Source: Macrostomum hystrix
Lineage: Eukaryota > Animalia > Platyhelminthes
Length of the DNA stretch: 64,000 nucleotides
Reading direction: 5' to 3'
NCBI GenBank assembly: GCA_950097015.1
Contig: CATNEN010000003.1
Location: 2,852,001 to 2,916,000 of the forward strand
Shown: positions 6,001 through 28,348 of the stretch, one piece after another
Numbering within the stretch: position 1 is the stretch's first letter
Layout of the letters: each line of letters starts with the position of its first letter
The notes under the pieces: model-generated
Databases searched by the model: none
The model's input: only the letters and a program-made list of their open reading frames with translations
Told to the model about the DNA's origin: nothing
Made by a program: the position numbers and the translations under genes

Positions 6001-9000
6001 AACGTCGGCAAGTGCTACGAGTTCCGAGTCACTGGAGTTCAAGGCGGCGTGGTGTGGGGCACTGACGTGTACACTTCGGACTCGAACTTTGGCTCGGCAG
6101 CAGTGCACACGGGTCTAATCAGAGCCGGAGAGACTCGCTACGTGCGCATCATAGTACGCAGGGGTCGCAACTCGTACAGAGGAAGCGTTCGCTACGGAGT
6201 CAGCACTCGCAACTATGGACGCTGGGGTCTGAGCTACACCTTCGCTGGCCTTGGTGGAGGCGGCTCAGGCAGACCGCGTCCAAGACCGCAGCCGAGACCG
6301 CAGCCGAGACCACGTCCGAGTCATGGAGGTGAGTGCTGATGCTGCTGGCCTTGCGCTTCTAAACTGTGATTCCCGTGCAGTGTGTCAAATATAAGTTAAC
6401 GACTAAACTGGCCTGTAAAGGCGAGCCGCAGTGAAAAGCTTTTTCAGTTATAATATTCGAGAAAATTCGCGTTTCTAAAGCGTCATCTTTTTATTTTGAT
6501 TCGCAATTCGATAGCTTGCCAGCGCGTCTCGTCGGTGAATGCCTACCTGAGGGCGTCGAACGTCGGCAAGTGCTACGAGTTCCGAGTCACTGGAGTTCAA
6601 GGCGGCGTGGTGTGGGGCACTGACGTGTACACTTCGGACTCGAACTTTGGCTCGGCAGCAGTGCACACGGGTCTAATCAGAGCCGGAGAGACTCGCTACG
6701 TGCGCATCATAGTACGCAGGGGTCGCAACTCGTACAGAGGAAGCGTTCGCTACGGAGTCAGCACTCGCAACTATGGACGCTGGGGTCTGAGCTACACCTT
6801 CGCTGGCCTTGGTGGAGGCGGCTCAGGCAGACCGCGTCCAAGACCGCAGCCGAGACCGCAGCCGAGACCACGTCCGAGTCATGGAGGTGAGTGCTGATGC
6901 TGCTGGCCTTGCGCTTCTAAACTGTGATTCCCGTGCAGTGTGTCAAATATAAGTTAACGACTAAACTGGCATGTAAAGGCGAGCCGCAGTGAAAAGCTTT
7001 TTCAGTTATAATATTCGAGAAAATTCGCGTTTCTAAAGCGTCATCTTTTTATTTTGATTCGCAATTCGATAGCTTGCCAGCGCGTCTCGTCGGTGAATGC
7101 CTACCTGAGGGCGTCGAACGTCGGCAAGTGCTACGAGTTCCGAGTCACTGGAGTTCAAGGCGGCGTGGTGTGGGGCACTGACGTGTACACTTCGGACTCG
7201 AACTTTGGCTCGGCAGCAGTGCACACGGGTCTAATCAGAGCCGGAGAGACTCGCTACGTGCGCATCATAGTACGCAGGGGTCGCAACTCGTACAGAGGAA
7301 GCGTTCGCTACGGAGTCAGCACTCGCAACTATGGACGCTGGGGTCTGAGCTACACCTTCGCTGGCCTTGGTGGAGGCGGCTCAGGCAGACCGCGTCCAAG
7401 ACCGCAGCCGAGACCGCAGCCGAGACCACGTCCGAGTCATGGAGGTGAGTGCTGATACTGCTGGCCTTGCGCTTCTAAACTGTGATTCCCGTGCAGTGTG
7501 TCAAATATAAGTTAACGACTAAACTGGCCTGTAAAGGCGAGCCGCAGTGAAAAGCTTTTTCAGTTATAATATTCGAGAAAATTCGCGTTTCTAAAGCGTC
7601 ATCTTTTTATTTTGATTCGCAATTCGATAGCTTGCCAGCGCGTCTCGTCGGTGAATGCCTACCTGAGGGCGTCGAACGTCGGCAAGTGCTACGAGTTCCG
7701 AGTCACTGGAGTTCAAGGCGGCGTGGTGTGGGGCACTGACGTGTACACTTCGGACTCGAACTTTGGCTCGGCAGCAGTGCACACGGGTCTAATCAGAGCC
7801 GGAGAGACTCGCTACGTGCGCATCATAGTACGCAGGGGTCGCAACTCGTACAGAGGAAGCGTTCGCTACGGAGTCAGCACTCGCAACTATGGACGCTGGG
7901 GTCTGAGCTACACCTTCGCTGGCCTCGGTGGAGGCGGCTCAGGCAGACCGCGTCCAAGACCGCAGCCGAGACCGCAGCCGAGACCACGTCCGAGTCATGG
8001 AGGTGAGTGCTGATACTGCTGGCCTTGCGCTTCTAAACTGTGATTCCCGTGCAGTGTGTCAAATATTAGTTAACGACTAAAGTGGCATGTGAAAGCGAGC
8101 CGCAGTGAAAAGCTTTTCAGTTATAAGTATTCGAGAAAATTCGCGTTTCTAAAGCGTCATCTTTTTATTTTGATTCGCAATTCGATAGCTTGCCAGCGCG
8201 TCTCGTCGGTGAATGCCTACCTGAGGGCGTCGAACGTCGGCAAGTGCTACGAGTTCCGAGTCACTGGAGTTCAAGGCGGCGTGGTGTGGGGCACTGACGT
8301 GTACACTTCGGACTCGAACTTTGGCTCGGCAGCAGTGCACACGGGTCTAATCAGAGCCGGAGAGACTCGCTACGTGCGCATCATAGTACGCAGGGGTCGC
8401 AACTCGTACAGAGGAAGCGTTCGCTACGGAGTCAGCACTCGCAACTATGGACGCTGGGGTCTGAGCTACACCTTCGCTGGCCTCGGTGGAGGCGGCTCAG
8501 GCAGACCGCGTCCAAGACCGCAGCCGAGACCGCAGCCGAGACCACGTCCGAGTCATGGAGGTGAGTGCTGATGCTGCTGGCCTTGCGCTTCTAAACTGTG
8601 ATTCCCGTGCAGTGTGTCAAATATTAGTTAACGACTAAAGTGGCATGTGAAAGGCGAGCCGCAGTGAAAAGCTTTTTCAGTTATAATATTCGAGAAAATT
8701 CGCGTTTCCAAAGCGTCATCTTTTTATTTTGATTCGCAATTCGATAGCTTGCCAGCGCGTCTCGTCGGTGAATGCCTACCTGAGGGCGTCGAACGTCGGC
8801 AAGTGCTACGAGTTCCGAGTCACTGGAGTTCAAGGCGGCGTGGTGTGGGGCACTGACGTGTACACTTCGGACTCGAACTTTGGCTCGGCAGCAGTGCACA
8901 CGGGTCTAATCAGAGCCGGAGAGACTCGCTACGTGCGCATCATAGTACGCAGGGGTCGCAACTCGTACAGAGGAAGCGTTCGCTACGGAGTCAGCACTCG

Positions 9001-12000
9001 CAACTATGGACGCTGGGGTCTGAGCTACACCTTCGCTGGCCTTGGTGGAGGCGGCTCAGGCAGACCGCGTCCAAGACCGCAGCCGAGACCGCAGCCGAGA
9101 CCACGTCCGAGTCATGGAGGTGAGTGCTGATGCTGCTGGCCTTGCGCTTCTAAACTGTGATTCCCGTGCAGTGTGTCAAATATAAGTTAACGACTAAACT
9201 GGCCTGTAAAGGCGAGCCGCAGTGAAAAGCTTTTTCAGTTATAATATTCGAGAAAATTCGCGTTTCTAAAGCGTCATCTTTTTATTTTGATTCGCAATTC
9301 GATAGCTTGCCAGCGCGTCTCGTCGGTGAATGCCTACCTGAGGGCGTCGAACGTCGGCAAGTGCTACGAGTTCCGAGTCACTGGAGTTCAAGGCGGCGTG
9401 GTGTGGGGCACTGACGTGTACACTTCGGACTCGAACTTTGGCTCGGCAGCAGTGCACACGGGTCTAATCAGAGCCGGAGAGACTCGCTACGTGCGCATCA
9501 TAGTACGCAGGGGTCGCAACTCGTACAGAGGAAGCGTTCGCTACGGAGTCAGCACTCGCAACTATGGACGCTGGGGTCTGAGCTACACCTTCGCTGGCCT
9601 CGGTGGAGGCGGCTCAGGCAGACCGCGTCCAAGACCGCAGCCGAGACCGCAGCCGAGACCACGTCCGAGTCATGGAGGTGAGTGCTGATGCTGCTGGCCT
9701 TGCGCTTCTAAACTGTGATTCCCGTGCAGTGTGTCAAATATTAGTTAACGACTAAAGTGGCATGTGAAAGCGAGCCGCAGTGAAAAGCATTCTTCAGTTA
9801 TAAGTATTCGAGAAAATTCGCGTTTCTAAAGCGTCATCTTTTTATTTTGATTCGCAATTCGATAGCTTGCCAGCGCGTCTCGTCGGTGAATGCCTACCTG
9901 AGGGCGTCGAACGTCGGCAAGTGCTACGAGTTCCGAGTCACTGGAGTTCAAGGCGGCGTGGTGTGGGGCACTGACGTGTACACTTCGGACTCGAACTTTG
10001 GCTCGGCAGCAGTGCACACGGGTCTAATCAGAGCCGGAGAGACTCGCTACGTGCGCATCATAGTACGCAGGGGTCGCAACTCGTACAGAGGAAGCGTTCG
10101 CTACGGAGTCAGCACTCGCAACTATGGACGCTGGGGTCTGAGCTACACCTTCGCTGGCCTCGGTGGAGGCGGCTCAGGCAGACCGCGTCCAAGACCGCAG
10201 CCGAGACCGCAGCCGAGACCACGTCCGAGTCATGGAGGTGAGTGCTGATGCTGCTGGCCTTGCGCTTCTAAACTGTGATTCCCGTGCAGTGTGTCAAATA
10301 TTAGTTAACGACTAAAGTGGCATGTGAAAGCGAGCCGCAGTGAAAAGCTTTTTCAGTTATAATATTCGAGAAAATTCGCGTTTCCAAAGCGTCATCTTTT
10401 TATTTTGATTCGCAATTCGATAGCTTGCCAGCGCGTCTCGTCGGTGAATGCCTACCTGAGGGCGTCGAACGTCGGCAAGTGCTACGAGTTCCGAGTCACT
10501 GGAGTTCAAGGCGGCGTGGTGTGGGGCACTGACGTGTACACTTCGGACTCGAACTTTGGCTCGGCAGCAGTGCACACGGGTCTAATCAGAGCCGGAGAGA
10601 CTCGCTACGTGCGCATCATAGTACGCAGGGGTCGCAACTCGTACAGAGGAAGCGTTCGCTACGGAGTCAGCACTCGCAACTATGGACGCTGGGGTCTGAG
10701 CTACACCTTCGCTGGCCTTGGTGGAGGCGGCTCAGGCAGACCGCGTCCAAGACCGCAGCCGAGACCGCAGCCGAGACCACGTCCGAGTCATGGAGGTGAG
10801 TGCTGATGCTGCTGGCCTTGCGCTTCTAAACTGTGATTCCCGTGCAGTGTGTCAAATATTAGTTAACGACTAAACTGGCCTGTAAAGGCGAGCCGCAGTG
10901 AAAAGCTTTTTCAGTTATAATATTCGAGAAAATTCGCGTTTCTAAAGCGTCATCTTTTTATTTTGATTCGCAATTCGATAGCTTGCCAGCGCGTCTCGTC
11001 GGTGAATGCCTACCTGAGGGCGTCGAACGTCGGCAAGTGCTACGAGTTCCGAGTCACTGGAGTTCAAGGCGGCGTGGTGTGGGGCACTGACGTGTACACT
11101 TCGGACTCGAACTTTGGCTCGGCAGCAGTGCACACGGGTCTAATCAGAGCCGGAGAGACTCGCTACGTGCGCATCATAGTACGCAGGGGTCGCAACTCGT
11201 ACAGAGGAAGCGTTCGCTACGGAGTCAGCACTCGCAACTATGGACGCTGGGGTCTGAGCTACACCTTCGCTGGCCTCGGTGGAGGCGGCTCAGGCAGACC
11301 GCGTCCAAGACCGCAGCCGAGACCGCAGCCGAGACCAAGTCCGAGTCATGGAGGTGAGTGCTGATGCTGCTGGCCTTGCGCTTCTAAACTGTGATTCCCG
11401 TGCAGTGTGTCAAATATTAGTTAACGACTAAAGTGGCATGTGAAAGCGAGCCGCAGTGAAAAGCATTCTTCGTTAAAGTATTCGAGAAAATTCGCGTTTC
11501 TAAAGCGTCATCTTTTTATTTTGATTCGCAATTCGATAGCTTGCCAGCGCGTCTCGTCGGTGAATGCCTACCTGAGGGCGTCGAACGTCGGCAAGTGCTA
11601 CGAGTTCCGAGTCACTGGAGTTCAAGGCGGCGTGGTGTGGGGCACTGACGTGTACACTTCGGACTCGAACTTTGGCTCGGCAGCAGTGCACACGGGTCTA
11701 ATCAGAGCCGGAGAGACTCGCTACGTGCGCATCATAGTACGCAGGGGTCGCAACTCGTACAGAGGAAGCGTTCGCTACGGAGTCAGCACTCGCAACTATG
11801 GACGCTGGGGTCTGAGCTACACCTTCGCTGGCCTTGGTGGAGGCGGCTCAGGCAGACCGCGTCCAAGACCGCAGCCGAGACCGCAGCCGAGACCACGTCC
11901 GAGTCATGGAGGTGAGTGCTGATGCTGCTGGCCTTGCGCTTCTAAACTGTGATTCCCGTGCAGTGTGTCAAATATTAGTTAACGACTAAAGTGGCATGTG

Positions 12001-15000
12001 AAAGCGAGCCGCAGTGAAAAGCATTCTTCGTTAAAGTATTCGAGAAAATTCGCGTTTCTAAAGCGTCATCTTTTTATTTTGATTCGCAATTCGATAGCTT
12101 GCCAGCGCGTCTCGTCGGTGAATGCCTACCTGAGGGCGTCGAACGTCGGCAAGTGCTACGAGTTCCGAGTCACTGGAGTTCAAGGCGGCGTGGTGTGGGG
12201 CACTGACGTGTACACTTCGGACTCGAACTTTGGCTCGGCAGCAGTGCACACGGGTCTAATCAGAGCCGGAGAGACTCGCTACGTGCGCATCATAGTACGC
12301 AGGGGTCGCAACTCGTACAGAGGAAGCGTTCGCTACGGAGTCAGCACTCGCAACTATGGACGCTGGGGTCTGAGCTACACCTTCGCTGGCCTCGGTGGAG
12401 GCGGCTCAGGCAGACCGCGTCCAAGACCGCAGCCGAGACCGCAGCCGAGACCACGTCCGAGTCATGGAGGTGAGTGCTGATGCTGCTGGCCTTGCGCTTC
12501 TAAACTGTGATTCCCGTGCAGTGTGTCAAATATTAGTTAATGACTAAAGTGGCATGTGAAAGCGAGCCGCAGTGAAAAGCTTTTTCAGTTATAATATTCG
12601 AGAAAATTCGCGTTTCCAAAGCGTCATCTTTTTATTTTGATTCGCAATTCGATAGCTTGCCAGCGCGTCTCGTCGGTGAATGCCTACCTGAGGGCGTCGA
12701 ACGTCGGCAAGTGCTACGAGTTCCGAGTCACTGGAGTTCAAGGCGGCGTGGTGTGGGGCACTGACGTGTACACTTCGGACTCGAACTTTGGCTCGGCAGC
12801 AGTGCACACGGGTCTAATCAGAGCCGGAGAGACTCGCTACGTGCGCATCATAGTACGCAGGGGTCGCAACTCGTACAGAGGAAGCGTTCGCTACGGAGTC
12901 AGCACTCGCAACTATGGACGCTGGGGTCTGAGCTACACCTTCGCTGGCCTTGGTGGAGGCGGCTCAGGCAGACCGCGTCCAAGACCGCAGCCGAGACCGC
13001 AGCCGAGACCACGTCCGAGTCATGGAGGTGAGTGCTGATGCTGCTGGCCTTGCGCTTCTAAACTGTGATTCCCGTGCAGTGTGTCAAATATTAGTTAACG
13101 ACTAAACTGGCCTGTAAAGGCGAGCCGCAGTGAAAAGCTTTTTCAGTTATAATATTCGAGAAAATTCGCGTTTCTAAAGCGTCATCTTTTTATTTTGATT
13201 CGCAATTCGATAGCTTGCCAGCGCGTCTCGTCGGTGAATGCCTACCTGAGGGCGTCGAACGTCGGCAAGTGCTACGAGTTCCGAGTCACTGGAGTTCAAG
13301 GCGGCGTGGTGTGGGGCACTGACGTGTACACTTCGGACTCGAACTTTGGCTCGGCAGCAGTGCACACGGGTCTAATCAGAGCCGGAGAGACTCGCTACGT
13401 GCGCATCATAGTACGCAGGGGTCGCAACTCGTACAGAGGAAGCGTTCGCTACGGAGTCAGCACTCGCAACTATGGACGCTGGGGTCTGAGCTACACCTTC
13501 GCTGGCCTCGGTGGAGGCGGCTCAGGCAGACCGCGTCCAAGACCGCAGCCGAGACCGCAGCCGAGACCACGTCCGAGTCATGGAGGTGAGTGCTGATGCT
13601 GCTGGCCTTGCGCTTCTAAACTGTGATTCCCGTGCAATGTGTCAAATATTAGTTAACGACTAAACTGGCCTGTAAAGGCGAGCCGCAGTGAAAAGCTTTT
13701 TCAGTTATAATATTCGAGAAAATTTGCGTTTCCAAAGCGTCATCTTTTTATTTTGATTCGCAATTCGATAGCTTGCCAGCGCGTCTCGTCGGTGAATGCC
13801 TACCTGAGGGCGTCGAACGTCGGCAAGTGCTACGAGTTCCGAGTCACTGGAGTTCAAGGCGGCGTGGTGTGGGGCACTGACGTGTACACTTCGGACTCGA
13901 ACTTTGGCTCGGCAGCAGTGCACACGGGTCTAATCAGAGCCGGAGAGACTCGCTACGTGCGCATCATAGTACGCAGGGGTCGCAACTCGTACAGAGGAAG
14001 CGTTCGCTACGGAGTCAGCACTCGCAACTATGGACGCTGGGGTCTGAGCTACACCTTCGCTGGCCTTGGTGGAGGCGGCTCAGGCAGACCGCGTCCAAGA
14101 CCGCAGCCGAGACCGCAGCCGAGACCACGTCCGAGTCATGGAGGTGAGTGCTGATACTGCTGGCCTTGCGCTTCTAAACTGTGATTCCCGTGCAGTGTGT
14201 CAAATATTAGTTAACGACTAAACTGGCCTGTAAAGGCGAGCCGCAGTGAAAAGCTTTTTCAGTTATAATATTCGAGAAAATTCGCGTTTCTAAAGCGTCA
14301 TCTTTTTATTTTGATTCGCAATTCGATAGCTTGCCAGCGCGTCTCGTCGGTGAATGCCTACCTGAGGGCGTCGAACGTCGGCAAGTGCTACGAGTTCCGA
14401 GTCACTGGAGTTCAAGGCGGCGTGGTGTGGGGCACTGACGTGTACACTTCGGACTCGAACTTTGGCTCGGCAGCAGTGCACACGGGTCTAATCAGAGCCG
14501 GAGAGACTCGCTACGTGCGCATCATAGTACGCAGGGGTCGCAACTCGTACAGAGGAAGCGTTCGCTACGGAGTCAGCACTCGCAACTATGGACGCTGGGG
14601 TCTGAGCTACACCTTCGCTGGCCTTGGTGGAGGCGGCTCAGGCAGACCGCGTCCAAGACCGCAGCCGAGACCGCAGCCGAGACCACGTCCGAGTCATGGA
14701 GGTGAGTGCTGATACTGCTGGCCTTGCGCTTCTAAACTGTGATTCCCGTGCAGTGTGTCAAATATTAGTTAACGACTAAACTGGCCTGTAAAGGCGAGCC
14801 GCAGTGAAAAGCTTTTTCAGTTATAATATTCGAGAAAATTCGCGTTTCTAAAGCGTCATCTTTTTATTTTGATTCGCAATTCGATAGCTTGCCAGCGCGT
14901 CTCGTCGGTGAATGCCTACCTGAGGGCGTCGAACGTCGGCAAGTGCTACGAGTTCCGAGTCACTGGAGTTCAAGGCGGCGTGGTGTGGGGCACTGACGTG

Positions 15001-18000
15001 TACACTTCGGACTCGAACTTTGGCTCGGCAGCAGTGCACACGGGTCTAATCAGAGCCGGAGAGACTCGCTACGTGCGCATCATAGTACGCAGGGGTCGCA
15101 ACTCGTACAGAGGAAGCGTTCGCTACGGAGTCAGCACTCGCAACTATGGACGCTGGGGTCTGAGCTACACCTTCGCTGGCCTCGGTGGAGGCGGCTCAGG
15201 CAGACCGCGTCCAAGACCGCAGCCGAGACCGCAGCCGAGACCACGTCCGAGTCATGGAGGTGAGTGCTGATGCTGCTGGCCTTGCGCTTCTAAACTGTGA
15301 TTCCCGTGCAGTGTGTCAAATATAAGTTAACGACTAAAGTGGCATGTGAAAGCGAGCCGCAGTGAAAAGCATTCTTCGTTAAAGTATTCGAGAAAATTCG
15401 CGTTTCTAAAGCGTCATCTTTTTATTTTGATTCGCAATTCGATAGCTTGCCAGCGCGTCTCGTCGGTGAATGCCTACCTGAGGGCGTCGAACGTCGGCAA
15501 GTGCTACGAGTTCCGAGTCACTGGAGTTCAAGGCGGCGTGGTGTGGGGCACTGACGTGTACACTTCGGACTCGAACTTTGGCTCGGCAGCAGTGCACACG
15601 GGTCTAATCAGAGCCGGAGAGACTCGCTACGTGCGCATCATAGTACGCAGGGGTCGCAACTCGTACAGAGGAAGCGTTCGCTACGGAGTCAGCACTCGCA
15701 ACTATGGACGCTGGGGTCTGAGCTACACCTTCGCTGGCCTTGGTGGAGGCGGCTCAGGCAGACCGCGTCCAAGACCGCAGCCGAGACCGCAGCCGAGACC
15801 ACGTCCGAGTCATGGAGGTGAGTGCTGATACTGCTGGCCTTGCGCTTCTAAACTGTGATTCCCGTGCAGTGTGTCAAATATTAGTTAACGACTAAACTGG
15901 CCTGTAAAGGCGAGCCGCAGTGAAAAGCTTTTTCAGTTATAATATTCGAGAAAATTCGCGTTTCTAAAGCGTCATCTTTTTATTTTGATTCGCAATTCGA
16001 TAGCTTGCCAGCGCGTCTCGTCGGTGAATGCCTACCTGAGGGCGTCGAACGTCGGCAAGTGCTACGAGTTCCGAGTCACTGGAGTTCAAGGCGGCGTGGT
16101 GTGGGGCACTGACGTGTACACTTCGGACTCGAACTTTGGCTCGGCAGCAGTGCACACGGGTCTAATCAGAGCCGGAGAGACTCGCTACGTGCGCATCATA
16201 GTACGCAGGGGTCGCAACTCGTACAGAGGAAGCGTTCGCTACGGAGTCAGCACTCGCAACTATGGACGCTGGGGTCTGAGCTACACCTTCGCTGGCCTCG
16301 GTGGAGGCGGCTCAGGCAGACCGCGTCCAAGACCGCAGCCGAGACCGCAGCCGAGACCACGTCCGAGTCATGGAGGTGAGTGCTGATGCTGCTGGCCTTG
16401 CGCTTCTAAACTGTGATTCCCGTGCAGTGTGTCAAATATTAGTTAACGACTAAAGTGGCATGTGAAAGCGAGCCGCAGTGAAAAGCATTCTTCGTTAAAG
16501 TATTCGAGAAAATTCGCGTTTCTAAAGCGTCATCTTTTTATTTTGATTCGCAATTCGATAGCTTGCCAGCGCGTCTCGTCGGTGAATGCCTACCTGAGGG
16601 CGTCGAACGTCGGCAAGTGCTACGAGTTCCGAGTCACTGGAGTTCAAGGCGGCGTGGTGTGGGGCACTGACGTGTACACTTCGGACTCGAACTTTGGCTC
16701 GGCAGCAGTGCACACGGGTCTAATCAGAGCCGGAGAGACTCGCTACGTGCGCATCATAGTACGCAGGGGTCGCAACTCGTACAGAGGAAGCGTTCGCTAC
16801 GGAGTCAGCACTCGCAACTATGGACGCTGGGGTCTGAGCTACACCTTCGCTGGCCTTGGTGGAGGCGGCTCAGGCAGACCGCGTCCAAGACCGCAGCCGA
16901 GACCGCAGCCGAGACCACGTCCGAGTCATGGAGGTGAGTGCTGATGCTGCTGGCCTTGCGCTTCTAAACTGTGATTCCCGTGCAGTGTGTCAAATATTAG
17001 TTAACGACTAAAGTGGCATGTGAAAGCGAGCCGCAGTGAAAAGCATTCTTCGTTAAAGTATTCGAGAAAATTCGCGTTTCTAAAGCGTCATCTTTTTATT
17101 TTGATTCGCAATTCGATAGCTTGCCAGCGCGTCTCGTCGGTGAATGCCTACCTGAGGGCGTCGAACGTCGGCAAGTGCTACGAGTTCCGAGTCACTGGAG
17201 TTCAAGGCGGCGTGGTGTGGGGCACTGACGTGTACACTTCGGACTCGAACTTTGGCTCGGCAGCAGTGCACACGGGTCTAATCAGAGCCGGAGAGACTCG
17301 CTACGTGCGCATCATAGTACGCAGGGGTCGCAACTCGTACAGAGGAAGCGTTCGCTACGGAGTCAGCACTCGCAACTATGGACGCTGGGGTCTGAGCTAC
17401 ACCTTCGCTGGCCTCGGTGGAGGCGGCTCAGGCAGACCGCGTCCAAGACCGCAGCCGAGACCGCAGCCGAGACCACGTCCGAGTCATGGAGGTGAGTGCT
17501 GATGCTGCTGGCCTTGCGCTTCTAAACTGTGATTCCCGTGCAGTGTGTCAAATATTAGTTAACGACTAAAGTGGCATGTGAAAGCGAGCCGCAGTGAAAA
17601 GCTTTTTCAGTTATAATATTCGAGAAAATTCGCGTTTCCAAAGCGTCATCTTTTTATTTTGATTCGCAATTCGATAGCTTGCCAGCGCGTCTCGTCGGTG
17701 AATGCCTACCTGAGGGCGTCGAACGTCGGCAAGTGCTACGAGTTCCGAGTCACTGGAGTTCAAGGCGGCGTGGTGTGGGGCACTGACGTGTACACTTCGG
17801 ACTCGAACTTTGGCTCGGCAGCAGTGCACACGGGTCTAATCAGAGCCGGAGAGACTCGCTACGTGCGCATCATAGTACGCAGGGGTCGCAACTCGTACAG
17901 AGGAAGCGTTCGCTACGGAGTCAGCACTCGCAACTATGGACGCTGGGGTCTGAGCTACACCTTCGCTGGCCTTGGTGGAGGCGGCTCAGGCAGACCGCGT

Positions 18001-21000
18001 CCAAGACCGCAGCCGAGACCGCAGCCGAGACCACGTCCGAGTCATGGAGGTGAGTGCTGATGCTGCTGGCCTTGCGCTTCTAAACTGTGATTCCCGTGCA
18101 GTGTGTCAAATATTAGTTAACGACTAAACTGGCCTGTAAAGGCGAGCCGCAGTGAAAAGCTTTTTCAGTTATAATATTCGAGAAAATTCGCGTTTCTAAA
18201 GCGTCATCTTTTTATTTTGATTCGCAATTCGATAGCTTGCCAGCGCGTCTCGTCGGTGAATGCCTACCTGAGGGCGTCGAACGTCGGCAAGTGCTACGAG
18301 TTCCGAGTCACTGGAGTTCAAGGCGGCGTGGTGTGGGGCACTGACGTGTACACTTCGGACTCGAACTTTGGCTCGGCAGCAGTGCACACGGGTCTAATCA
18401 GAGCCGGAGAGACTCGCTACGTGCGCATCATAGTACGCAGGGGTCGCAACTCGTACAGAGGAAGCGTTCGCTACGGAGTCAGCACTCGCAACTATGGACG
18501 CTGGGGTCTGAGCTACACCTTCGCTGGCCTCGGTGGAGGCGGCTCAGGCAGACCGCGTCCAAGACCGCAGCCGAGACCGCAGCCGAGACCACGTCCGAGT
18601 CATGGAGGTGAGTGCTGATGCTGCTGGCCTTGCGCTTCTAAACTGTGATTCCCGTGCAATGTGTCAAATATAAGTTAACGACTAAACTGGCCTGTAAAGG
18701 CGAGCCGCAGTGAAAAGCTTTTTCAGTTATAATATTCGAGAAAATTCGCGTTTCCAAAGCGTCATCTTTTTATTTTGATTCGCAATTCGATAGCTTGCCA
18801 GCGCGTCTCGTCGGTGAATGCCTACCTGAGGGCGTCGAACGTCGGCAAGTGCTACGAGTTCCGAGTCACTGGAGTTCAAGGCGGCGTGGTGTGGGGCACT
18901 GACGTGTACACTTCGGACTCGAACTTTGGCTCGGCAGCAGTGCACACGGGTCTAATCAGAGCCGGAGAGACTCGCTACGTGCGCATCATAGTACGCAGGG
19001 GTCGCAACTCGTACAGAGGAAGCGTTCGCTACGGAGTCAGCACTCGCAACTATGGACGCTGGGGTCTGAGCTACACCTTCGCTGGCCTTGGTGGAGGCGG
19101 CTCAGGCAGACCGCGTCCAAGACCGCAGCCGAGACCGCAGCCGAGACCACGTCCGAGTCATGGAGGTGAGTGCTGATACTGCTGGCCTTGCGCTTCTAAA
19201 CTGTGATTCCCGTGCAGTGTGTCAAATATTAGTTAACGACTAAACTGGCCTGTAAAGGCGAGCCGCAGTGAAAAGCTTTTTCAGTTATAATATTCGAGAA
19301 AATTCGCGTTTCTAAAGCGTCATCTTTTTATTTTGATTCGCAATTCGATAGCTTGCCAGCGCGTCTCGTCGGTGAATGCCTACCTGAGGGCGTCGAACGT
19401 CGGCAAGTGCTACGAGTTCCGAGTCACTGGAGTTCAAGGCGGCGTGGTGTGGGGCACTGACGTGTACACTTCGGACTCGAACTTTGGCTCGGCAGCAGTG
19501 CACACGGGTCTAATCAGAGCCGGAGAGACTCGCTACGTGCGCATCATAGTACGCAGGGGTCGCAACTCGTACAGAGGAAGCGTTCGCTACGGAGTCAGCA
19601 CTCGCAACTATGGACGCTGGGGTCTGAGCTACACCTTCGCTGGCCTTGGTGGAGGCGGCTCAGGCAGACCGCGTCCAAGACCGCAGCCGAGACCGCAGCC
19701 GAGACCACGTCCGAGTCATGGAGGTGAGTGCTGATACTGCTGGCCTTGCGCTTCTAAACTGTGATTCCCGTGCAGTGTGTCAAATATTAGTTAACGACTA
19801 AACTGGCCTGTAAAGGCGAGCCGCAGTGAAAAGCTTTTTCAGTTATAATATTCGAGAAAATTCGCGTTTCTAAAGCGTCATCTTTTTATTTTGATTCGCA
19901 ATTCGATAGCTTGCCAGCGCGTCTCGTCGGTGAATGCCTACCTGAGGGCGTCGAACGTCGGCAAGTGCTACGAGTTCCGAGTCACTGGAGTTCAAGGCGG
20001 CGTGGTGTGGGGCACTGACGTGTACACTTCGGACTCGAACTTTGGCTCGGCAGCAGTGCACACGGGTCTAATCAGAGCCGGAGAGACTCGCTACGTGCGC
20101 ATCATAGTACGCAGGGGTCGCAACTCGTACAGAGGAAGCGTTCGCTACGGAGTCAGCACTCGCAACTATGGACGCTGGGGTCTGAGCTACACCTTCGCTG
20201 GCCTCGGTGGAGGCGGCTCAGGCAGACCGCGTCCAAGACCGCAGCCGAGACCGCAGCCGAGACCACGTCCGAGTCATGGAGGTGAGTGCTGATGCTGCTG
20301 GCCTTGCGCTTCTAAACTGTGATTCCCGTGCAGTGTGTCAAATATAAGTTAACGACTAAAGTGGCATGTGAAAGCGAGCCGCAGTGAAAAGCATTCTTCG
20401 TTAAAGTATTCGAGAAAATTCGCGTTTCTAAAGCGTCATCTTTTTATTTTGATTCGCAATTCGATAGCTTGCCAGCGCGTCTCGTCGGTGAATGCCTACC
20501 TGAGGGCGTCGAACGTCGGCAAGTGCTACGAGTTCCGAGTCACTGGAGTTCAAGGCGGCGTGGTGTGGGGCACTGACGTGTACACTTCGGACTCGAACTT
20601 TGGCTCGGCAGCAGTGCACACGGGTCTAATCAGAGCCGGAGAGACTCGCTACGTGCGCATCATAGTACGCAGGGGTCGCAACTCGTACAGAGGAAGCGTT
20701 CGCTACGGAGTCAGCACTCGCAACTATGGACGCTGGGGTCTGAGCTACACCTTCGCTGGCCTTGGTGTAGGCGGCTCAGGCAGACCGCGTCCAAGACCGC
20801 AGCCGAGACCGCAGCCGAGACCACGTCCGAGTCATGGAGGTGAGTGCTGATGCTGCTGGCCTTGCGCTTCTAAACTGTGATTCCCGTGCAGTGTGTCAAA
20901 TATAAGTTAACGACTAAACTGGCCTGTAAAGGCGAGCCGCAGTGAAAAGCTTTTTCAGTTATAATATTCGAGAAAATTCGCGTTTCTAAAGCGTCATCTT

Positions 21001-21535
21001 TTTATTTTGATTCGCAATTCGATAGCTTGCCAGCGCGTCTCGTCGGTGAATGCCTACCTGAGGGCGTCGAACGTCGGCAAGTGCTACGAGTTCCGAGTCA
21101 CTGGAGTTCAAGGCGGCGTGGTGTGGGGCACTGACGTGTACACTTCGGACTCGAACTTTGGCTCGGCAGCAGTGCACACGGGTCTAATCAGAGCCGGAGA
21201 GACTCGCTACGTGCGCATCATAGTACGCAGGGGTCGCAACTCGTACAGAGGAAGCGTTCGCTACGGAGTCAGCACTCGCAACTATGGACGCTGGGGTCTG
21301 AGCTACACCTTCGCTGGCCTTGGTGGAGGCGGCTCAGGCAGACCGCGTCCAAGACCGCAGCCGAGACCGCAGCCGAGACCACGTCCGAGTCATGGAGGTG
21401 AGTGCTGATGCTGCTGGCCTTGCGCTTCTAAACTGTGATTCCCGTGCAGTGTGTCAAATATTAGTTAACGACTAAACTGGCCTGTAAAGGCGAGCCGCAG
21501 TGAAAAGCTTTCTGCGTTAAAATATTCGAGAAAAG
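1..21535 (+). repeat. Tandem array of 558-bp (558-560) exon+intron units, at least 39 copies, near-identical
   Basis: ORF ends recur at 198, 756, 1316 ... 21408. Length differences between units fall only in the ~186-nt intron. Confidence 0.98.
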
Positions 21536-22611
21536 TCGTGGATCTGGAATGTCTTGTTTTATGCGGACACACTTTTTTGTACTGGTATTTTGCTTTTGCT
21601 TTAGTTGATGTTCTTCGCGTAATATTTTTTTACAATACTTTTATTCACGTTTCGTGTTGCTGACTTTATAATTATTTTTATATATTTTTGTTTGCTCATT
21701 GTAGGGCTTGGCAGGAAACCTGGCCAGAGACCCGCTAAGGGACCTGGCAAGAGACCCGGCAAGAGACCCGGCAAGAGACCAGGCATAAGACCCGGCAAGC
21801 GACCTGGCAAGAGACCAGGCAAGAAACCCGGCAAGCGACCAGGCAAGAAACCTGGCAAGAGACCAGGCAAGAAACCTGGCAAGAGACCAGGCAAGCGACC
21901 TGGCAAGAGACCAAGTAAGCGACCCGGCAAGAGACCCGGCATGCGACCTGGCAAGAGACCAGGCAAGAAACCTGGCAAGAGACCAGGCAAGAGACCCGGC
22001 AAGAGACCAGGCAAGAGACCAGGCAAGAAGCCTGGCAAGAGACCTGGCAAGAGACCAGGCAAGAAACCCGGCAAGAGACCCGGCAAGAGACCAGGCAAGA
22101 AACCTGGCAAGAGACCAGGCAAGCGACCTGGCAAGAGACCAAGTAAGCGACCCGGCAAGAGACCCGGCATGCGACCTGGCAAGAGACCAGGCAAGAAACC
22201 TGGCAAGAGACCAGGCAAGAGACCCGGCAAGAGACCAGGCAAGAGACCAGGCAAGAAACCTGGCAAGAGACCAGGCAAGAGACCCGGCAAGAGACCAGGC
22301 AGGCGACCCGGCAAGAGACCAGGCAAGCGACCCGGCAAGCGACCCGGCAAGAGACCAGGCAAGAGACCCGGCAAGAGACCAGGCAAGAAATATTTTCTGT
22401 ATTTCGTAGTTTTTTTACGCCAATGGGTATCATTTCCACATTAAATGCTTTTATTTTCAACATTACATTATCAGAAAATAAGTACATTTAAAAGTCCATT
22501 CTTAAGGCAGCGCATAATTTTGCCCCGTTCACCGTTGCAGAGCACAAGGCCAATAAGCTCATTGACGTCACTGAAGTGTCATCGTGTAACGAGGCAGCAA
22601 ACCTGTTTTAA
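1..22611 (+). CDS. Giant multi-LCCL cationic protein, 5' end outside the window. Exons: partial 1-187; 38 complete 372-nt exons (first 374-745, last 21026-21397, ~558-bp spacing); GKRP-repeat exon 21705-22382 (donor uncertain); terminal exon 22541-22611
   Basis: Each unit has a T-rich tract with acceptor ttcgatAG|CT and donor GAG|GTGAGT, both phase 1, so G+CT gives Ala and the frame continues. Motifs VWGTDVYTSDS..AAVHTGLI and YRGSVRYGVSTRNYGRW.SY.F match LCCL. The acceptors at 21704 and 22540 are also phase 1. Stop TAA at 22609-22611, AATAAA at 22656-22661. Confidence 0.88.
21705..22382 (+). CDS. Coding exon of ~55 tetrapeptide repeats GKRP/GKKP (12-bp unit), up to 226 aa
   Basis: Acceptor tttgctcattgtAG|GG in phase 1. 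Codon third positions vary (CCA/CCC/CCT, AGA/CGA) while the peptide is kept. Contains a 228-bp internal duplication (SKRP at 21914 and 22142). Confidence 0.8.
22541..22611 (+). CDS. Terminal exon (E/K)HKANKLIDVTEVSSCNEAANLF*
   Basis: Acceptor ccgttgcAG in phase 1. Frame, length and stop are conserved in the paralogous exon at 27569-27639. Confidence 0.8.
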
Positions 22612-22655
22612 CAGCTTCGTAGTTTTCCTTTGCAACTTTGTTTTTTGCTCGGACC

Positions 22656-22661
22656 AATAAA
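22656..22661 (+). terminator. Polyadenylation signal AATAAA of the LCCL gene
   Basis: 45 nt after the stop; conserved in the paralog at 27674-27679. Confidence 0.7.
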
Positions 22662-23153
22662 TTGGTGATGGGAACAAAGACTGCGGTTACGCAAATAGAA
22701 TACTATTCTCAAGGCGATACTTCGAGCCGCGAGGCTGTATGTAATCTCAAAAATATAAGTGACTTACTAGAAAACAACTCATGATGGAAATATTTTCACA
22801 GCTTCCGCGAGTCGTTCGTTCTTTCGTTGTCACGTGGCTTAGAAGTCTATATTTTAGTGTTATTAATTTTTGCGCCTTCCAAACTATGTGCAATTGAGGG
22901 AATATTTTGATACAGGTTGTCCGACTGAGCTACACGTCGTTATCTCGTAAAATTTATTTTTTAAAACAATTTCCTTTAAAAACTTACTGAAGTTTTACCG
23001 GAGTTACGAAATACTGAATTTACCTACATGCATCTCTTTAAGGTAGAAGTCGAACTAAAATATTTATAAAACTCTGTTTTTTTCAAGTCTTTGCTGCACG
23101 CCGGTCTCGTTTGTATTTTAGAGGCTGGCTGGATTCGCAATGCAGTACAGTCG

Positions 23154-24247
23154 CAGGGACAACTAAAACCCTCGGGACGCGAAACGAGCCAATTCATGGC
23201 AAAAAATCTGAGGGGCTCGCTTAAAAGTATTGTTCTATGGCTTTTTCGAGTCTTCTCTGCTATCAGGCATTAACGGTTAGATAGTAAATAGTAAAGCGAG
23301 GCAATGTCGAGTATTTAATTTAAAGAATAGGAACCAGTGATATAGTTACAATCTATTTACAATAAAGTAACCGCCATATCAACAAAAAAACTCCAACGGC
23401 AAGAAGATAAAGGGTGAAAGCGAAGATGAAACTCCAACGGCAAGAAAAAAGAAGCAAATACGGAACTCCAAGAACAAGACGACACAAACAGTCAGTAGCT
23501 CGTACATAAAGGAAACGCTGGAACTTCATATACTGAGCATCTAACTTCCGAAGCTATCTATCATGGGATGTCGTCGGTATTGGTGGGAGTTCGACGAGCG
23601 TCTTACTAGTCCTTTGAAAAAAACGTTGGCTAGCGGACGGGACACACTGTCCATGCTGAACTGTGTCTTAGTTGGAAATTAAAAGTCCTTAATAACATAA
23701 AACAGCTTCTGCACGCGAGTTGCGCGCGTAGGAGAGTGCAGAATAAAACTTCTGTAGACAGGATAAGTCTAATGCTTTACGCACACGCCCATATTGTCAG
23801 TCACTCTCTAAAATAATAAATTTTGGGTTTCAAGTTGTTTGGACGAGACTGGCATGCAGAATTGAAGCGGAATTATGCAGCAGTAATGACAGCAAATGAT
23901 CTGGTTTCTTACCTGTAGAATATTTGGCAGCGCCTTTCTCCATCGCTCTCGCTCAGCTGTGGATCTCTGGGAAACGCAAATATCCGTGTTCGAACGGCTT
24001 CAGAGTTGTAATTTGACGAGCACGGAAATACGCTGCACTTTCTTGGCATTTCATCAAGTGAATAAAAAATGCTTCTCTTGATATAGTTCAGCTTAGCTTC
24101 ACTGCTGGCCGCAGCTAAAGCAATTTTAATTTGCCTGATAGCAGAGAAGACTCGAAAAAGCCATAGAACAATACTTTTAAGCGAGCCCCTCAGATTTTTT
24201 GCCATGAATTGGCTCGTTTCGCGTCCCGAGGGTTTTAGTTGTCCCTG
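23154..24247 (-). mobile_element. Non-autonomous TIR DNA transposon (1094 bp) with a THAP-domain remnant; P-element-like, hAT not excluded
   Basis: 116-bp TIRs (23154-23269 and 24132-24247) and a perfect 8-bp TSD TACAGTCG (23146-23153 and 24248-24255). Minus strand 24049-23913 reads MPRKCSVFPCSSNY...RIFAFPRDPQL, then a frameshift, then ERWRKALPN and a CAG|GTAAG donor. Confidence 0.88.
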
Positions 24248-24441
24248 TACAGTCGGTTGGTACATTCTTACATAGGAACCAGTTGCTATGACGTCTGCTC
24301 AAATACTTGTCAAATAGGCTCCGAGCAACACATTCGCTGATCTCTTCTTATTGAAGGACTCTACTTTTTGAGTAGTCGCACTGTTAGCCAAACGAAGTTG
24401 TACTAGGCTATATAAAATTATCTTTAACTAATTGAATACAG

Positions 24442-24945
24442 CAGGGGTCGGCAAACTCCGGCCCGCGGGCCAGATGCGGCCCTCGAAGCTCCCAAATCCG
24501 GCCCGTTGCCCCTTCTGACATCTACAGAGTCCTGTTTCATCTCTCCCGTGTCTAATCTCTCCCGTGTCTAATCTCTCCCGTGTCTAATCTCTCCCGTGTC
24601 TAATCTCTCCCGTGTCTAATCTCTCCCGTGTCTAATTTCTCCCATGTCTTATCTCTACCGTGTCTAATCTCTCCCGTGTCTAATTTCTCCCATGTCTTAT
24701 CTCTACCGTGTCTAATCTCTCCCGTGTCTAATTTCTCCCATGTCTTATCTCTACCGTGTCTAATCTCTCCCGTGTCTAATCTCTACCGTGTCTAATCTCT
24801 CCCGTGTCTAATCTCTCCCGTGTCTAATCTCTCCCGTGTCTAATCTCATCTCTCCCCTATCTCATATTTATACAGTTAATGCGGCCCGCTGTCGTCTTTT
24901 AGGTTCTCTCTTTGGCCCGCCAGCAAATAAGTTTGCCTACCCCTG
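24442..24945. mobile_element. hAT (Charlie-like) MITE carrying an internal 16-bp minisatellite
   Basis: TIRs CAGGGGTCGGCAAACT / AGTTTGCCTACCCCTG and subterminal GGCCCG motifs. Imperfect 8-bp flanks gaaTACAG / cttTACAG. (atctctcccgtgtcta)n at ~24538-24860. Confidence 0.78.
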
Positions 24946-25815
24946 CTTTACAGTTTATTTCTTACCAGCCCCTACTTTTTCTTATTAGGTAAATACCTTT
25001 GTATTCACAGCTAATGTATTTACAGATTTTCGTATCGTTATTTGATATGAGAAAGATTCTTAGTAAAATATATTAATATTGTATTTTAGCTCTGAAACTG
25101 GTGCTACCAAGTCATGAAAACACAAAAATAAAATAGAAACACAAATTACTGGAAAGGCATTCGCTTCCAGTATCTCCAATAAACACGACACTGCGCGCTG
25201 GAAATCGTACAATCGTACAACAACTGTCAATCAACGATAGATTTTTCAGAGACACTCGTACTGCGGACGAGTACATTTTTTGGTGCAAAAAGCATTTATA
25301 TTTTGCTTGGTATATCAAACGACACGTTTAACAATCCATCTACGAGCTCGTACGTGAATGCGGTAGTTTTACTGTGCATTTAAAAGAAACAATATCCGCG
25401 TGTGTTTAAACTATTTTCAATTACAAGCTTATACTTAGACACAGCAACCTGAGCTCGTTTAGCTGCTATATTAGACTGAAAATTAATAGTTAAGCCATAA
25501 ACATTGTGGCTAATGAGCTTAGAAGAACCATTTTCCTATATGTACAAACCGAAATTGCAGAAACAAAATATTAGGCTGAACGTGCCTGGACAATGTGTGC
25601 CTGCAAATAATTGTCGCTTCACATACCAGCTGCGTGACTAAAATTCAACCACTAAGCTTTCTTGTTTTACTGTCCGATTCGTTACTGTTATAAGACGCTA
25701 GCAAGATATACAGGAAATTTCATTCTTGAAATATATTTTTTAAGTAGATGCCATTGTATGAGACGATGACAAACATCGATTATCAGAAGTCGTTCCAAAA
25801 CATAACAATAGTCAG

Positions 25816-25879
25816 TGCCACGTAGCCGACAAGTGACAAGCGGTATATAAAAAAGTTATACGAGTCATCAGGCTTCAGT
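25816..25879 (+). promoter_or_regulatory. Core promoter of the WSC paralog: TATA box 25846-25852, Inr TCAGT 25875-25879, possible CREB3/XBP1-type TGCCACGT at 25816-25823
   Basis: TATAAAA lies ~31 nt before the A of TCAGT, just upstream of a signal-peptide ATG at 25884. Confidence 0.6.
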
Positions 25880-25883
25880 AACT

Positions 25884-27639
25884 ATGCTGCATCTAAGCAG
25901 ATTGCTGCTGCTTGGAGTCTGCTTTGGTTTTCTCCTAGTGACAGTAAACGCGAACTTCAGTAAGTTGTCACACTGCATGGCTCTGCTAACTACCTAGCGG
26001 ATTTTTGCTTCAACAACACAAATCTGCAGCCTCAATAAAACTGTTTTAATTCATTCTGAATAGTCAATTTGTCAAGTGACTACAAAATCTTGCTGCCAAG
26101 GATGCCCTCCGTAAAGAGGCTAACCCTTAAGTCAACTTTGCTTGATAATATTTTGAATGGTATCGCTGGCATCTTTTTTGTTATTAGTTGGCGCTTCGGT
26201 TAGGGATTGTATAGCAATGTATTTATATTAAGGATTTACTTTAATTAGAACGCATATCATTTAATCAGTAGCATGTACTGTGCAGCTTGACTCTGTGCTA
26301 AAACAGAATATTGACAGGCAGATACCGTCGCTCAGTAATGTCTCGTTTCGTTGAACCAGGCAGAACGCTCTTGACTCACATACTGAGCTTTGAAATCAAT
26401 GGTTGCATTGAAATGCGATGTTTTTCTACGATTTTCCGACCCAGAAGTGAGACGAATCGGCTGCTTCGTGGACAAGGGTGACGCCAGAGACCTTCCATTG
26501 ATCCATAAGAGCGACAAGATGACACAGGAGTACTGCATTAACCGTTGTCGCTCAATGGGGTACAAAGTACGCCTCCCTGCAGGCTAGCAACTGGTGCCAC
26601 TGCGGCAACACGTACGGCATTCACGGCAGAGCTTGAGACTCCGAGTGCAACAGGCACTGCATTGGAAACAATTACTGTAGAGCTGTTCAAATTTGTGAAC
26701 TAATGGAGAACATAGTGAGTCTTACGTGAATCGCAACGCCGCCGTCTACAGACGGCCTCAGACTGGGCTGCTTTAGCGACAGCTGGGCAGCTCCAGAGAC
26801 TTGACTGCTGAGTGCCACCTAAGATGATCGCTTCTTTTTGGTAGACCCCTCTGAGTGCAACTCAACCTGTGAACTAAATGCTTTGAGATCTCAATTAGTA
26901 AGAATTTTACGAAAAAAGCTTATACAACACATTTCCTTGTTCCAACAGGCGGCGCCAGCCCTAGTCGTCCTGGAAGGCTACCTGAAAAGAAACCCGGAAA
27001 GCTACCTGAAAGGATACCTCCACGAGAGACCTCGCAATAGACCTGGAAGGCGACCTCACGACCGATCCTTGAAGCCGTATGACAGGCCTGGTGGGTGCAA
27101 GTATTTTTATTTACTTTAGAACACACTTCAGCTACCTTATGAAATCTCTTGCTAAAGCTTTCGACGTTGTGAAGTTTCGACCTTATGAAGTTTCGACCTA
27201 GTGAAGGTAGCTGTTTTTTTAGTTTTCGACGTTGTGAAGTTTCGAGCTTATGAAATTTCGAGCTTATGCAGTCCCTTGCTTGAGTTTTCGACCTTATGAA
27301 GTTTCGATCTAATGAATTTTCGACCTAGTGAAGGTAGCTGCTATTTTAGTTTTCGATGTTGTGAAATTTCGACCTTGTGAACTTTCGACCTTGTGAAGAA
27401 AGGTGCTTTCGACGTTGTGAAATTTTGAGTTTGTGAAACCCCCTACGCTTGTCATGCTCTCTCTCTGCTAACCTGCCAAGCTTCTTTGCTGTTACAATTC
27501 TTAAAGGTACATTAAAAAGTATACTGCAGCTCGTGATAGGTAATTTTACTCCGATTTACCCGTTGCAGAGCATAAGGCCAATAAGATCATTGACGTCACT
27601 GAAGATTCATCATTTAAGGAGGCAGCAAAACTGTTTTAA
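25884..27639 (+). pseudogene. Disrupted secreted WSC-domain protein gene, paralogous in its 3' modules to the LCCL gene
   Basis: Exon 25884-25959: MLHLSRLLLLGVCFGFLLVTVNANF, donor A|GTAAGT, phase 1. Exon from 26445: IGCFVDKGDARDLP..MTQEYCINRCRSMGYK, +1 frameshift near 26565, YASLQASNWCHCGNTYG, TGA at 26634-26636, then DSECNRHCIGN (WSC). Second degraded WSC LGCFSDS..RDL near 26760-26870. Pro/Arg/Gly exon 26949-27090 with a +1 frameshift. Terminal exon 27569-27639 EHKANKIIDVTEDSSFKEAAKLF*. Confidence 0.85.
27150..27440. repeat. Degenerate ~16-bp repeat (tttcgaccttgtgaag) in the last intron of the WSC pseudogene
   Basis: Repeated tttcgac(c/g)tt(a/g)tgaa motif. Confidence 0.75.
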
Positions 27640-27940
27640 GCATCATAGCAAATTATAATTCGACTCGTGGACAAATAAATTGGTGTTGGGATCAAGACTG
27701 CGAATACGCTATTAAAATTAACAAATCACGAGGTTGAAATTGCAAAGGAAAAAGTTTCCAAAAAATATATAAGATTTGGATTATCGATAGAAAGTTTCCT
27801 CAAAGTTATTCAGTTTGTTCCTTCTTTTCATCTATTATAATTTCACAATTAGTTTTCTGTGTTTTATCGTATTGTTCTACGGTTATGTTTAAGCCAAACT
27901 CGTAATTTGACCTTGAAAATGAGCTAAGATCCTGAGAAGA

Positions 27941-28348
27941 CAGTGGCGCAACCAGGGGGGAGGCGGGGGGGCGGCCCTTCGGCCCGCGGGCAATGTACGC
28001 AAAGGGCAAGCCAAGACGCTTCTTAATTTATTACCTTATCTCATTCCCTGTCCCCCAAGTCCAACGTACATAGACCAAAGACCAAGTCCAAGACCATTGG
28101 TCATGCATATATTAATTTTCAAGCTTTCATTATAATCGTGCGTGCGTTCGGATTTTTTAAACCTTTTAAATCGTCTAATCCCTACCCTACTGGCCCTTGA
28201 AATTGGCCCAGGAATGGTGGGCGAAAACCGCGAAACAGAGCGCGCTCCACCTGGCGGTCGCCCCCCCTTCGACCCGCGGGGCAATGTACGCAAAGGGCAA
28301 TGTACGCAAAGACCGCCCCCCCTAAGGCAAAACCTGGTTGCGCCACTG
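27941..28348. mobile_element. hAT-like MITE (~408 bp)
   Basis: 16-bp TIRs CAGTGGCGCAACCAGG / CCTGGTTGCGCCACTG. Flanks cctga(ga)aga / cctgaaga fit a mutated 8-bp TSD. Internal direct repeat gggcaatgtacgcaaag. Confidence 0.78.

Follow-up and report, generated by a model that had tools for sequence, protein, structure and literature searches.

Loci analyzed

The DNA analyzed here is a stretch of 64,000 nt from the genome of the flatworm Macrostomum hystrix (assembly GCA_950097015.1, contig CATNEN010000003.1, positions 2,852,001 to 2,916,000 of the forward strand), which we refer to as the window and whose numbering is used unless another locus is named. Its first third holds the 3' part of a giant gene composed of repeated LCCL domain exons, which is followed by a polycationic exon encoding Pro/Gly/Lys/Arg repeats (the PGKR exon) and by a terminal exon encoding a peptide of 23 residues (the tag). 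A pseudogene related to WSC domain genes lies 3 kb downstream of the LCCL gene, on the same strand, and has a terminal exon and poly(A) region of the same type. The subject of this report is this shared 3' end, or tail, which a first-pass annotation had taken as the mark of a modular gene family. The predicted features of the two genes are listed below.

1..21397, + strand, part of the LCCL array within the window: 38 full 558-bp units by spacing, with the last LCCL exon at 21026-21397
21705..22382, + strand, polycationic (PGKR)n exon: phase-1 acceptor, open reading frame (ORF) with tandem repeats, 226 codons if the GC donor at 22383 is used
22383..22540, + strand, last intron of the LCCL gene: alignable with the last intron of the pseudogene at the 5' start and over the 3' 60 nt
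22541..22611, + strand, terminal exon of the LCCL gene: phase 1, (E)HKANKLIDVTEVSSCNEAANLF, stop codon TAA
22612..22714, + strand, 3' untranslated region (UTR) of the LCCL gene: AATAAA at 22656-22661 and a downstream conserved island TTGGTG.TGGGA.CAAGACTGCG..TACGC
25884..25959, + strand, signal exon of the WSC pseudogene: MLHLSRLLLLGVCFGFLLVTVNANF, phase-1 donor A/GTAAGT, TATA-like box about 35 nt upstream
26445..26714, + strand, broken WSC exon 1: phase-1 acceptor, frameshift near 26567, in-frame TGA at 26634-26636, terminal CGG motif lost
26750..26907, + strand, remnant of WSC exon 2: 158 nt versus about 290 nt, disrupted by a frameshift and stops, and still recognizable by RLGCFSD and DPSECNSTC only
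26949..27090, + strand, degenerate cationic exon, homologue of the PGKR exon: 142 nt, frameshifted, TAG in the acceptor frame, phase-1 donor G/GTGGGT
27091..27568, + strand, last intron of the pseudogene: contains a tandem repeat (16/65/127 bp, 27134-27398) that accounts for its enlargement
27569..27639, + strand, terminal exon of the pseudogene: intact, (E)HKANKIIDVTEDSSFKEAAKLF, stop codon TAA
27640..27733, + strand, 3'UTR of the pseudogene: AATAAA at 27674-27679 and the same conserved downstream island as in the LCCL gene

The 3' ends of the two genes are homologous by sequence comparison

Direct reading confirmed that the two terminal exons agree in length, phase and stop codon, as had been claimed in the first-pass annotation. 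Both start immediately after conserved acceptors (..CCGTTGCAG/AG, at 22541 and 27569), both are in phase 1, and both end with TAA. When the first base of the split codon is included, positions 22540-22611 translate into EHKANKLIDVTEVSSCNEAANLF and positions 27568-27639 into EHKANKIIDVTEDSSFKEAAKLF, each followed by the stop, and 18 of the 23 encoded residues are identical. A local blastn comparison aligned 22482-22714 with 27507-27733 (72% identity over 242 nt, E 2e-33), which bears out the earlier proposal that the homology reaches about 60 nt into the preceding intron and continues through the AATAAA region. From 5' to 3', the identity of the two copies is 65% in the last 60 nt of the intron, 89% in the terminal exon, about 50% (that is, not alignable) in the UTR beside the stop codon, 82% in the AATAAA and the adjoining 45 nt, and again about 50% downstream of this poly(A) island. 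Conservation above the level of the flanks (50-65%) was significant both for the terminal exon (Fisher p 1e-5) and for the poly(A) island (p 0.006), and the string AATAAA..TTGGTG..AAGACTGCG occurs in both copies. The last introns additionally align at their 5' starts (GCAAG..TATTTT), and a part of the cationic exon of the pseudogene, 26966-27056, matched the PGKR units with about 70% identity (blastn, E 3e-10).

Taken together, these alignments indicate true homology of the tail exon with its terminal peptide and of the poly(A) region; the cationic exons are homologous as well, with weaker similarity. As far as the comparison of the two loci can demonstrate, the homology of the two genes is limited to this 3' module.

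The LCCL gene has a homogenized array and no WSC exon

The 558-bp unit of the LCCL gene is present in 57 repeats in all, and the array begins 10.2 kb before the window. Each unit consists of a 372-nt exon of phase 1-1 and an intron of 186-188 nt, with the acceptor GATAG/CT and the donor GGAG/GTGAGT. The exon encodes an LCCL domain (Pfam PF03815, 46.9 bits versus a cut-off of 22.6, E 3e-12), and the ESM Atlas returned nothing beyond 'LCCL'. Of the 57 array exons, 56 have a length of 372 nt, with variation at six positions, four of them synonymous, and the identity within the array exceeds 99.9%. In a related species, the polycationic LCCL unit was found at 87% protein identity (proteins P0021 and P0151-P0153, on contigs of 0.5-1.2 kb) and with a different linker, of Pro/His/Arg; the gene calls in that species read into both introns, indicating the same exon-intron design of the unit. 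The identity within the array is thus far above the identity between the species, which points to concerted evolution.

The gene starts 11 kb before the window. Its signal exon (L005:8987-9068, encoding MKPHLSSVLFAIFVALNIAKSGNANWS, with a phase-1 donor) lies 102 nt before a diverged first LCCL exon (L005:9173-9637; Pfam 56.1 bits, E 4.5e-15), which is followed by the 57 near-identical exons, giving a total of 58. The first-pass annotation had noted that the pseudogene would be a deletion derivative, and not a product of domain exchange, if WSC exons were present in the 5' part of the LCCL gene. This part was read through the signal exon, and no WSC exon was found upstream in the gene; thus, the pseudogene is not a deletion derivative, and the bodies of the two genes differ by domain type. 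The protein summed from the exons of the LCCL gene would have about 7,500 residues and carry a net charge of about +1,030, beside which the net charge of the tag, -2, is negligible.

The junction between the PGKR exon and the tail exon

The PGKR exon contributes a net charge of +108. A donor scan revealed no phase-1 GT donor at its 3' end, so that splicing into the tail exon would require either a GC-AG intron or one of the internal donors. An in-phase candidate GC donor, CAG/GCAAGA, is present at 22383, at the position homologous to the pseudogene donor G/GTGGGT: in the alignment, the LCCL gene lacks six bases exactly at the donor of the pseudogene and then continues with the same GCAAG..TATTTT intron start. 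The sequence CAG/GCAAGA fits the GC-AG donor consensus. Altogether, the PGKR exon has 19 in-phase CAG/GCAAG sites (18 internal ones besides 22383) as well as two in-phase internal candidate GT donors, CAA/GTAAGC, at 21915 and 22143. Depending on the donor, the exon would comprise 70 codons (21915), 146 codons (22143) or 226 codons (22383), and all three choices keep the frame. The unspliced frame runs on for 19 more codons to ...KKYFLYFVVFLRQWVSFPH and a stop at 22442-22444. The earlier statement that both tail exons follow a phase 1-1 exon consequently stands for the phase-1 acceptor of the PGKR exon, but it fails at the donor side of this exon and for the cationic exon of the pseudogene, the 142 nt of which are not a multiple of three.

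Judged from these motifs, the terminal GC donor at 22383 has about an even chance of being the junction into the tail exon. Splicing from the internal GT donors is a possible but less probable route, and read-through of the PGKR exon to the stop at 22442-22444 is unlikely. If the donors are used alternatively, they could in principle vary the length of the cationic tail while the C-terminal tag remains constant.

A reading built on the read-through treats the tail exons of both genes as relics. In that case the LCCL gene would have lost its GT donor, and its protein would end with ...PGKKYFLYFVVFLRQWVSFPH; the gap of six nucleotides precisely at the pseudogene's donor and the 19 further open codons would fit such a loss. 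However, the tail exon of the LCCL gene keeps its open frame, its acceptor with a polypyrimidine tract and its AATAAA island, and it is conserved far above its flanks. Moreover, the GC boundary and the two good internal GT donors offer routes into this exon, and no AATAAA is found from the read-through stop to 22656. We therefore regard a relic tail in the LCCL gene as improbable, though it fares better than the other alternatives treated below.

The WSC gene is an unprocessed pseudogene

Over the first half of WSC exon 1, the match to the Pfam WSC family (PF01822) reached 24.0 bits (E 4e-5), below the cut-off of 27.8. A tblastn search with the intact WSC domains of locus C38 gave matches to the exon (E 1e-16 to 2e-19) that are split over two frames and interrupted by a stop. 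By these comparisons, exon 1 is WSC-derived, but it is not an intact WSC domain. The classification of the downstream copy as a pseudogene was corroborated by the frameshifts, the in-frame TGA, the truncated WSC exon 2 and the length of the cationic exon. Since introns are kept and disabling lesions relative to intact paralogues are found in three exons, it is an unprocessed pseudogene.

Could the WSC gene nevertheless be alive, its lesions being assembly errors or being spliced around? The gene does retain an intact TATA-like box, signal exon, last exon and poly(A) site, and one of the LCCL exons likewise carries a single-base insertion that is possibly an assembly error. On the other hand, at least five independent lesions are spread over three exons, among them the loss of about 130 nt from WSC exon 2 and of the CGG motif, and the in-frame TGA is not an error of the homopolymer type. 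A live WSC gene is thus very improbable.

The last intron of the pseudogene is three times as long as its counterpart in the LCCL gene, owing to the TTTCGACCTTGTGAAG-like tandem repeat at 27134-27398.

Phase 1 is general, and other WSC loci end differently

Reading assigned phase 1 to both signal-exon donors, all LCCL exons, the acceptor of the PGKR exon, the acceptors of both WSC remnants and the acceptors of both last exons, so that the earlier observation that every definable junction is in phase 1 holds at the junctions read. This phase is not special to the pair, because the three intact WSC exons at C38, one domain of which scored 67.8 bits in Pfam, are all phase 1-1 too. Phase 1-1 is a general rule for animal extracellular modules (Patthy's rule). 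The LCCL exons and the intact C38 WSC exons are class 1-1 modules, with phase-1 introns on both sides and a length that is a multiple of three.

The signal exons of the two genes share their design, with 25-27 codons and a phase-1 donor. Their homology was considered, as both end with NAN[WF], and was rejected: the best DNA match between the signal exons and 5' regions was not significant (E 0.92), and the similarity of the signal peptides (HLS.., NAN[WF]) was equalled by 815 of 5,000 shuffles (16%). Of the flanks around the different modules, the 3' flank is homologous, whereas the 5' signal exons are alike in design only, without significant similarity.

WSC exons are abundant in the genome, with at least 150 matches and large tandem arrays on C1, C7, C38 and C39. 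Downstream of the four other WSC loci (C38, C7, C39 and C1), neither a cationic exon nor the tag was found; their 3' flanks hold VWA-like and further WSC exons, or other genes. A shared ending of WSC genes is therefore not indicated. The coordinates of the WSC arrays are G000:C7:5915503-5933669, C39:10682051-10711556, C1:8450636-8502466 and C38:4080866-4081380, and at C7 at least 11 units follow one another with a strict period of 1,724 bp.

Only two copies of the tail exist in the assembly

The first-pass annotation had called for a genome search with the 23-residue peptide. Across the whole assembly (220 Mb, 42 contigs), the tail was searched by three methods, namely with the tail DNA, with a degenerate 33-nt back-translation of HKANKxIDVTE allowing up to 2 mismatches, and with the 23-residue peptide, and each method found exactly two copies. 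The search thus yielded the LCCL and the WSC bodies upstream of the two loci, but no further domain types. Both copies lie on the same strand, and each is located behind a Pro/Gly/Lys/Arg exon. Neither the tail nor the PGKR run was found in the best 150 of 3,815 LCCL proteins from 1.84 billion representatives. The PGKR exon together with its read-through (245 aa) retrieved only low-complexity look-alikes and no orthologue when used as a query, and the best PGKR match other than itself, at C33:3251331, is a satellite and not a gene of this kind. A search of 21400-28000 against Rfam gave no match.

The presence of only two copies excludes a dispersed repeat as well as a multi-member family. The latter, like a cassette system, would be expected to have the tag in more than two copies and downstream of several gene bodies, which is not what the assembly contains. 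The earlier designations 'modular family' and 'cassette system' are thus not appropriate for exactly two genomic copies, one of them dead. By the content of this assembly, the LCCL/WSC pair is the sole such case and thus represents a single local instance of exon shuffling rather than a gene family.

A genome-wide cassette system, as originally envisaged, would combine a signal exon, exchangeable glycan-binding repeats, a polycationic tail and a C-terminal tag for sorting or assembly. The common tail, the different domain types and the phase-1 junctions are what such a system would produce. It is nonetheless contradicted by the number of tag copies, by the lack of significant similarity between the signal exons, by the other endings of the C38, C7, C39 and C1 loci and by the negative result for the best 150 LCCL proteins, and we consider it even less credible than a live WSC gene. 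Least tenable of all is the option, named in the first-pass annotation as a possible refutation, that the shared segment is a dispersed repeat, or a piece of a transposon, which happened to insert downstream of both genes: mobile-element-like repeats are present in the intergenic space, but the two copies have the same strand, position and phase behind a homologous cationic exon, and no terminal repeats were found at the edges of the homology.

Origin of the shared 3' end

The arrangement is probably best explained by a 3' gene end that was duplicated locally a long time ago and now closes two neighbouring genes with different bodies of class 1-1 modules, one of them alive and amplified, the other one decaying. 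This duplication would have copied the Pro/Gly/Lys/Arg exon, the last intron, the terminal exon of 23 codons and the poly(A) site, and the resulting 3' module would now end two neighbours on the same strand that are built from different extracellular modules. Since the module boundaries are all in phase 1, the same tail can follow either LCCL or WSC exons in frame. The upstream gene would be the working one, in which the signal exon is followed by the 58 LCCL exons (concerted evolution having homogenized 57 of them), by an expanded (PGKR)n exon and by the tail; its product would be secreted. In the downstream gene, the tail would have been preceded by a signal exon, a pair of WSC exons and a short cationic exon, and this gene would have decayed while keeping its promoter-like TATA box, signal exon, last exon and poly(A) site. 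In both genes, the tail exon may act as a non-repetitive 3' cap that provides the stop codon and the signals for 3' end processing. The conserved poly(A) region adjoins it. A further role of the tail peptide, such as the sorting or charge masking considered in the first-pass annotation, is conjecture.

The terminal exons differ by 11%, whereas the neutral flanks are nearly unalignable. From this difference we infer that the tail was constrained for much of the time since the duplication and that the death of the WSC copy was fairly recent.

Several points weigh against this explanation. First, the phase-1 GT donor that would carry the LCCL gene into its tail exon is missing at the end of the PGKR exon. 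Second, the exon boundaries and junctions are predictions from reading of the sequence, with the exons searched singly. Third, the remaining array exon (L008:7023-7395, window -2977 to -2605) has a length of 373 nt, because a 1-nt insertion turns CTGAGGGC into CTGAAGGGC and leads to a frameshift and a TGA. This insertion may be an assembly error; otherwise it is a real lesion, tolerable only if this symmetric exon is skipped, and inclusion of the exon would then break the giant gene. Fourth, the NG86 analysis of the tail exon pair resulted in an omega of about 0.55 (2.5 synonymous and 5.5 non-synonymous changes), and the 8 differences are too few for a test. Lastly, an outgroup would be required to tell which way the duplication went and in what order the domains changed.

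More speculatively, the tail and the poly(A) island might represent a selected 'terminator cassette' for the polycationic secretory proteins of this lineage. The peptide would then be a signal for packaging or sorting into gland granules, and the GC and GT donors would let splicing set the length of the cationic part ahead of the same tag. We regard this proposal as doubtful, somewhat more so than a relic tail.

Comparison with known systems

The locus resembles class 1-1 exon shuffling in that each LCCL exon and each intact WSC exon corresponds to one domain between phase-1 introns, and in that different modules precede a homologous 3' end. It is unlike this process in that only the 3' module is demonstrably common and in that just two genes are concerned, one of which is dead. 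Partial tandem duplication followed by decay is the other obvious parallel, since the copies are adjacent and on the same strand, have kept their introns, and one of them has frameshifts, stops and deletions. Unlike in such duplications, the body exons are LCCL in one gene and WSC in the other, and no common 5' end is recognizable. Because the body exons and the 5' ends are not common, a plain duplication of a whole gene is insufficient, and module exchange or capture of a 3' end is needed in addition. The shared tail is a single local case of a known process that combines module shuffling, partial duplication and pseudogene decay.

Lys/Arg-rich adhesion proteins have been described in flatworms. 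In Mlig-ap1 of Macrostomum lignano, which is expressed in the adhesive glands, KR-rich regions flank a core of C-type lectin, vWD/C8/TIL and EGF domains (PMC6410801), and Minona ileanae has a GRK-rich protein, Mile-ap3, as well as an LCCL protein, Mile-ao1, that is expressed in the adhesive organs (PMC6745481). Like these large, secreted and extremely cationic proteins, the LCCL protein, as predicted from its gene, has a high charge and a large size, and the likeness is limited to these two properties. However, LCCL is the sole globular domain of the gene, and its cationic unit is PGKR. The cationic region is thus present, but the C-type lectin/vWD/C8/TIL/EGF core is absent, and by its domain content the gene does not belong to the Mlig-ap1 type.

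Spidroins are repetitive structural proteins with a short conserved non-repetitive C-terminal domain. The LCCL protein similarly would have a long homogenized repeat core followed by a short, unique and conserved end, but this end comprises only 23 residues, is without a known fold or function, and has no homologue outside of this locus.

As evidence for a new sorting tag or for a modular family, the shared tail does not hold up. The locus is instead a small and clean case of how a giant secreted repeat protein can be assembled, with phase-1 domain exons, amplifiable to 57 copies, placed before a reusable 3' end. For work on expression or knock-down, the model of the LCCL gene provides a base, as it gives the start of the gene, the lack of WSC exons and the problem at the 3' junction.

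Intergenic region and remainder of the window

The spacer between the two genes contains a perfect inverted repeat of 116 nt, with arms at 23154-23269 and 24132-24247 and 862 nt between them, which resembles either a very recent mobile element or a rearrangement that created a palindrome. A THAP-like domain was suspected in a 118-aa ORF at this repeat (23909-24265, - strand), and was discarded as Pfam gave no match. An element resembling a miniature inverted-repeat transposable element follows at 24436-24960; it has imperfect terminal inverted repeats (TACAGCAGGGGTCGGCAAACT, with the complement near 24930-24950) and encloses a 16-bp satellite in 19 copies (24539-24847). Similar ends, bearing GGCCCGCGGGCC, recur near 27960-28000. 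The region from 30000 to 64000 is densely filled with short-period satellites of 12-34 bp, in arrays of up to 3 kb (e.g., 49055-52057 and 43485-45700), and has a strong strand skew.

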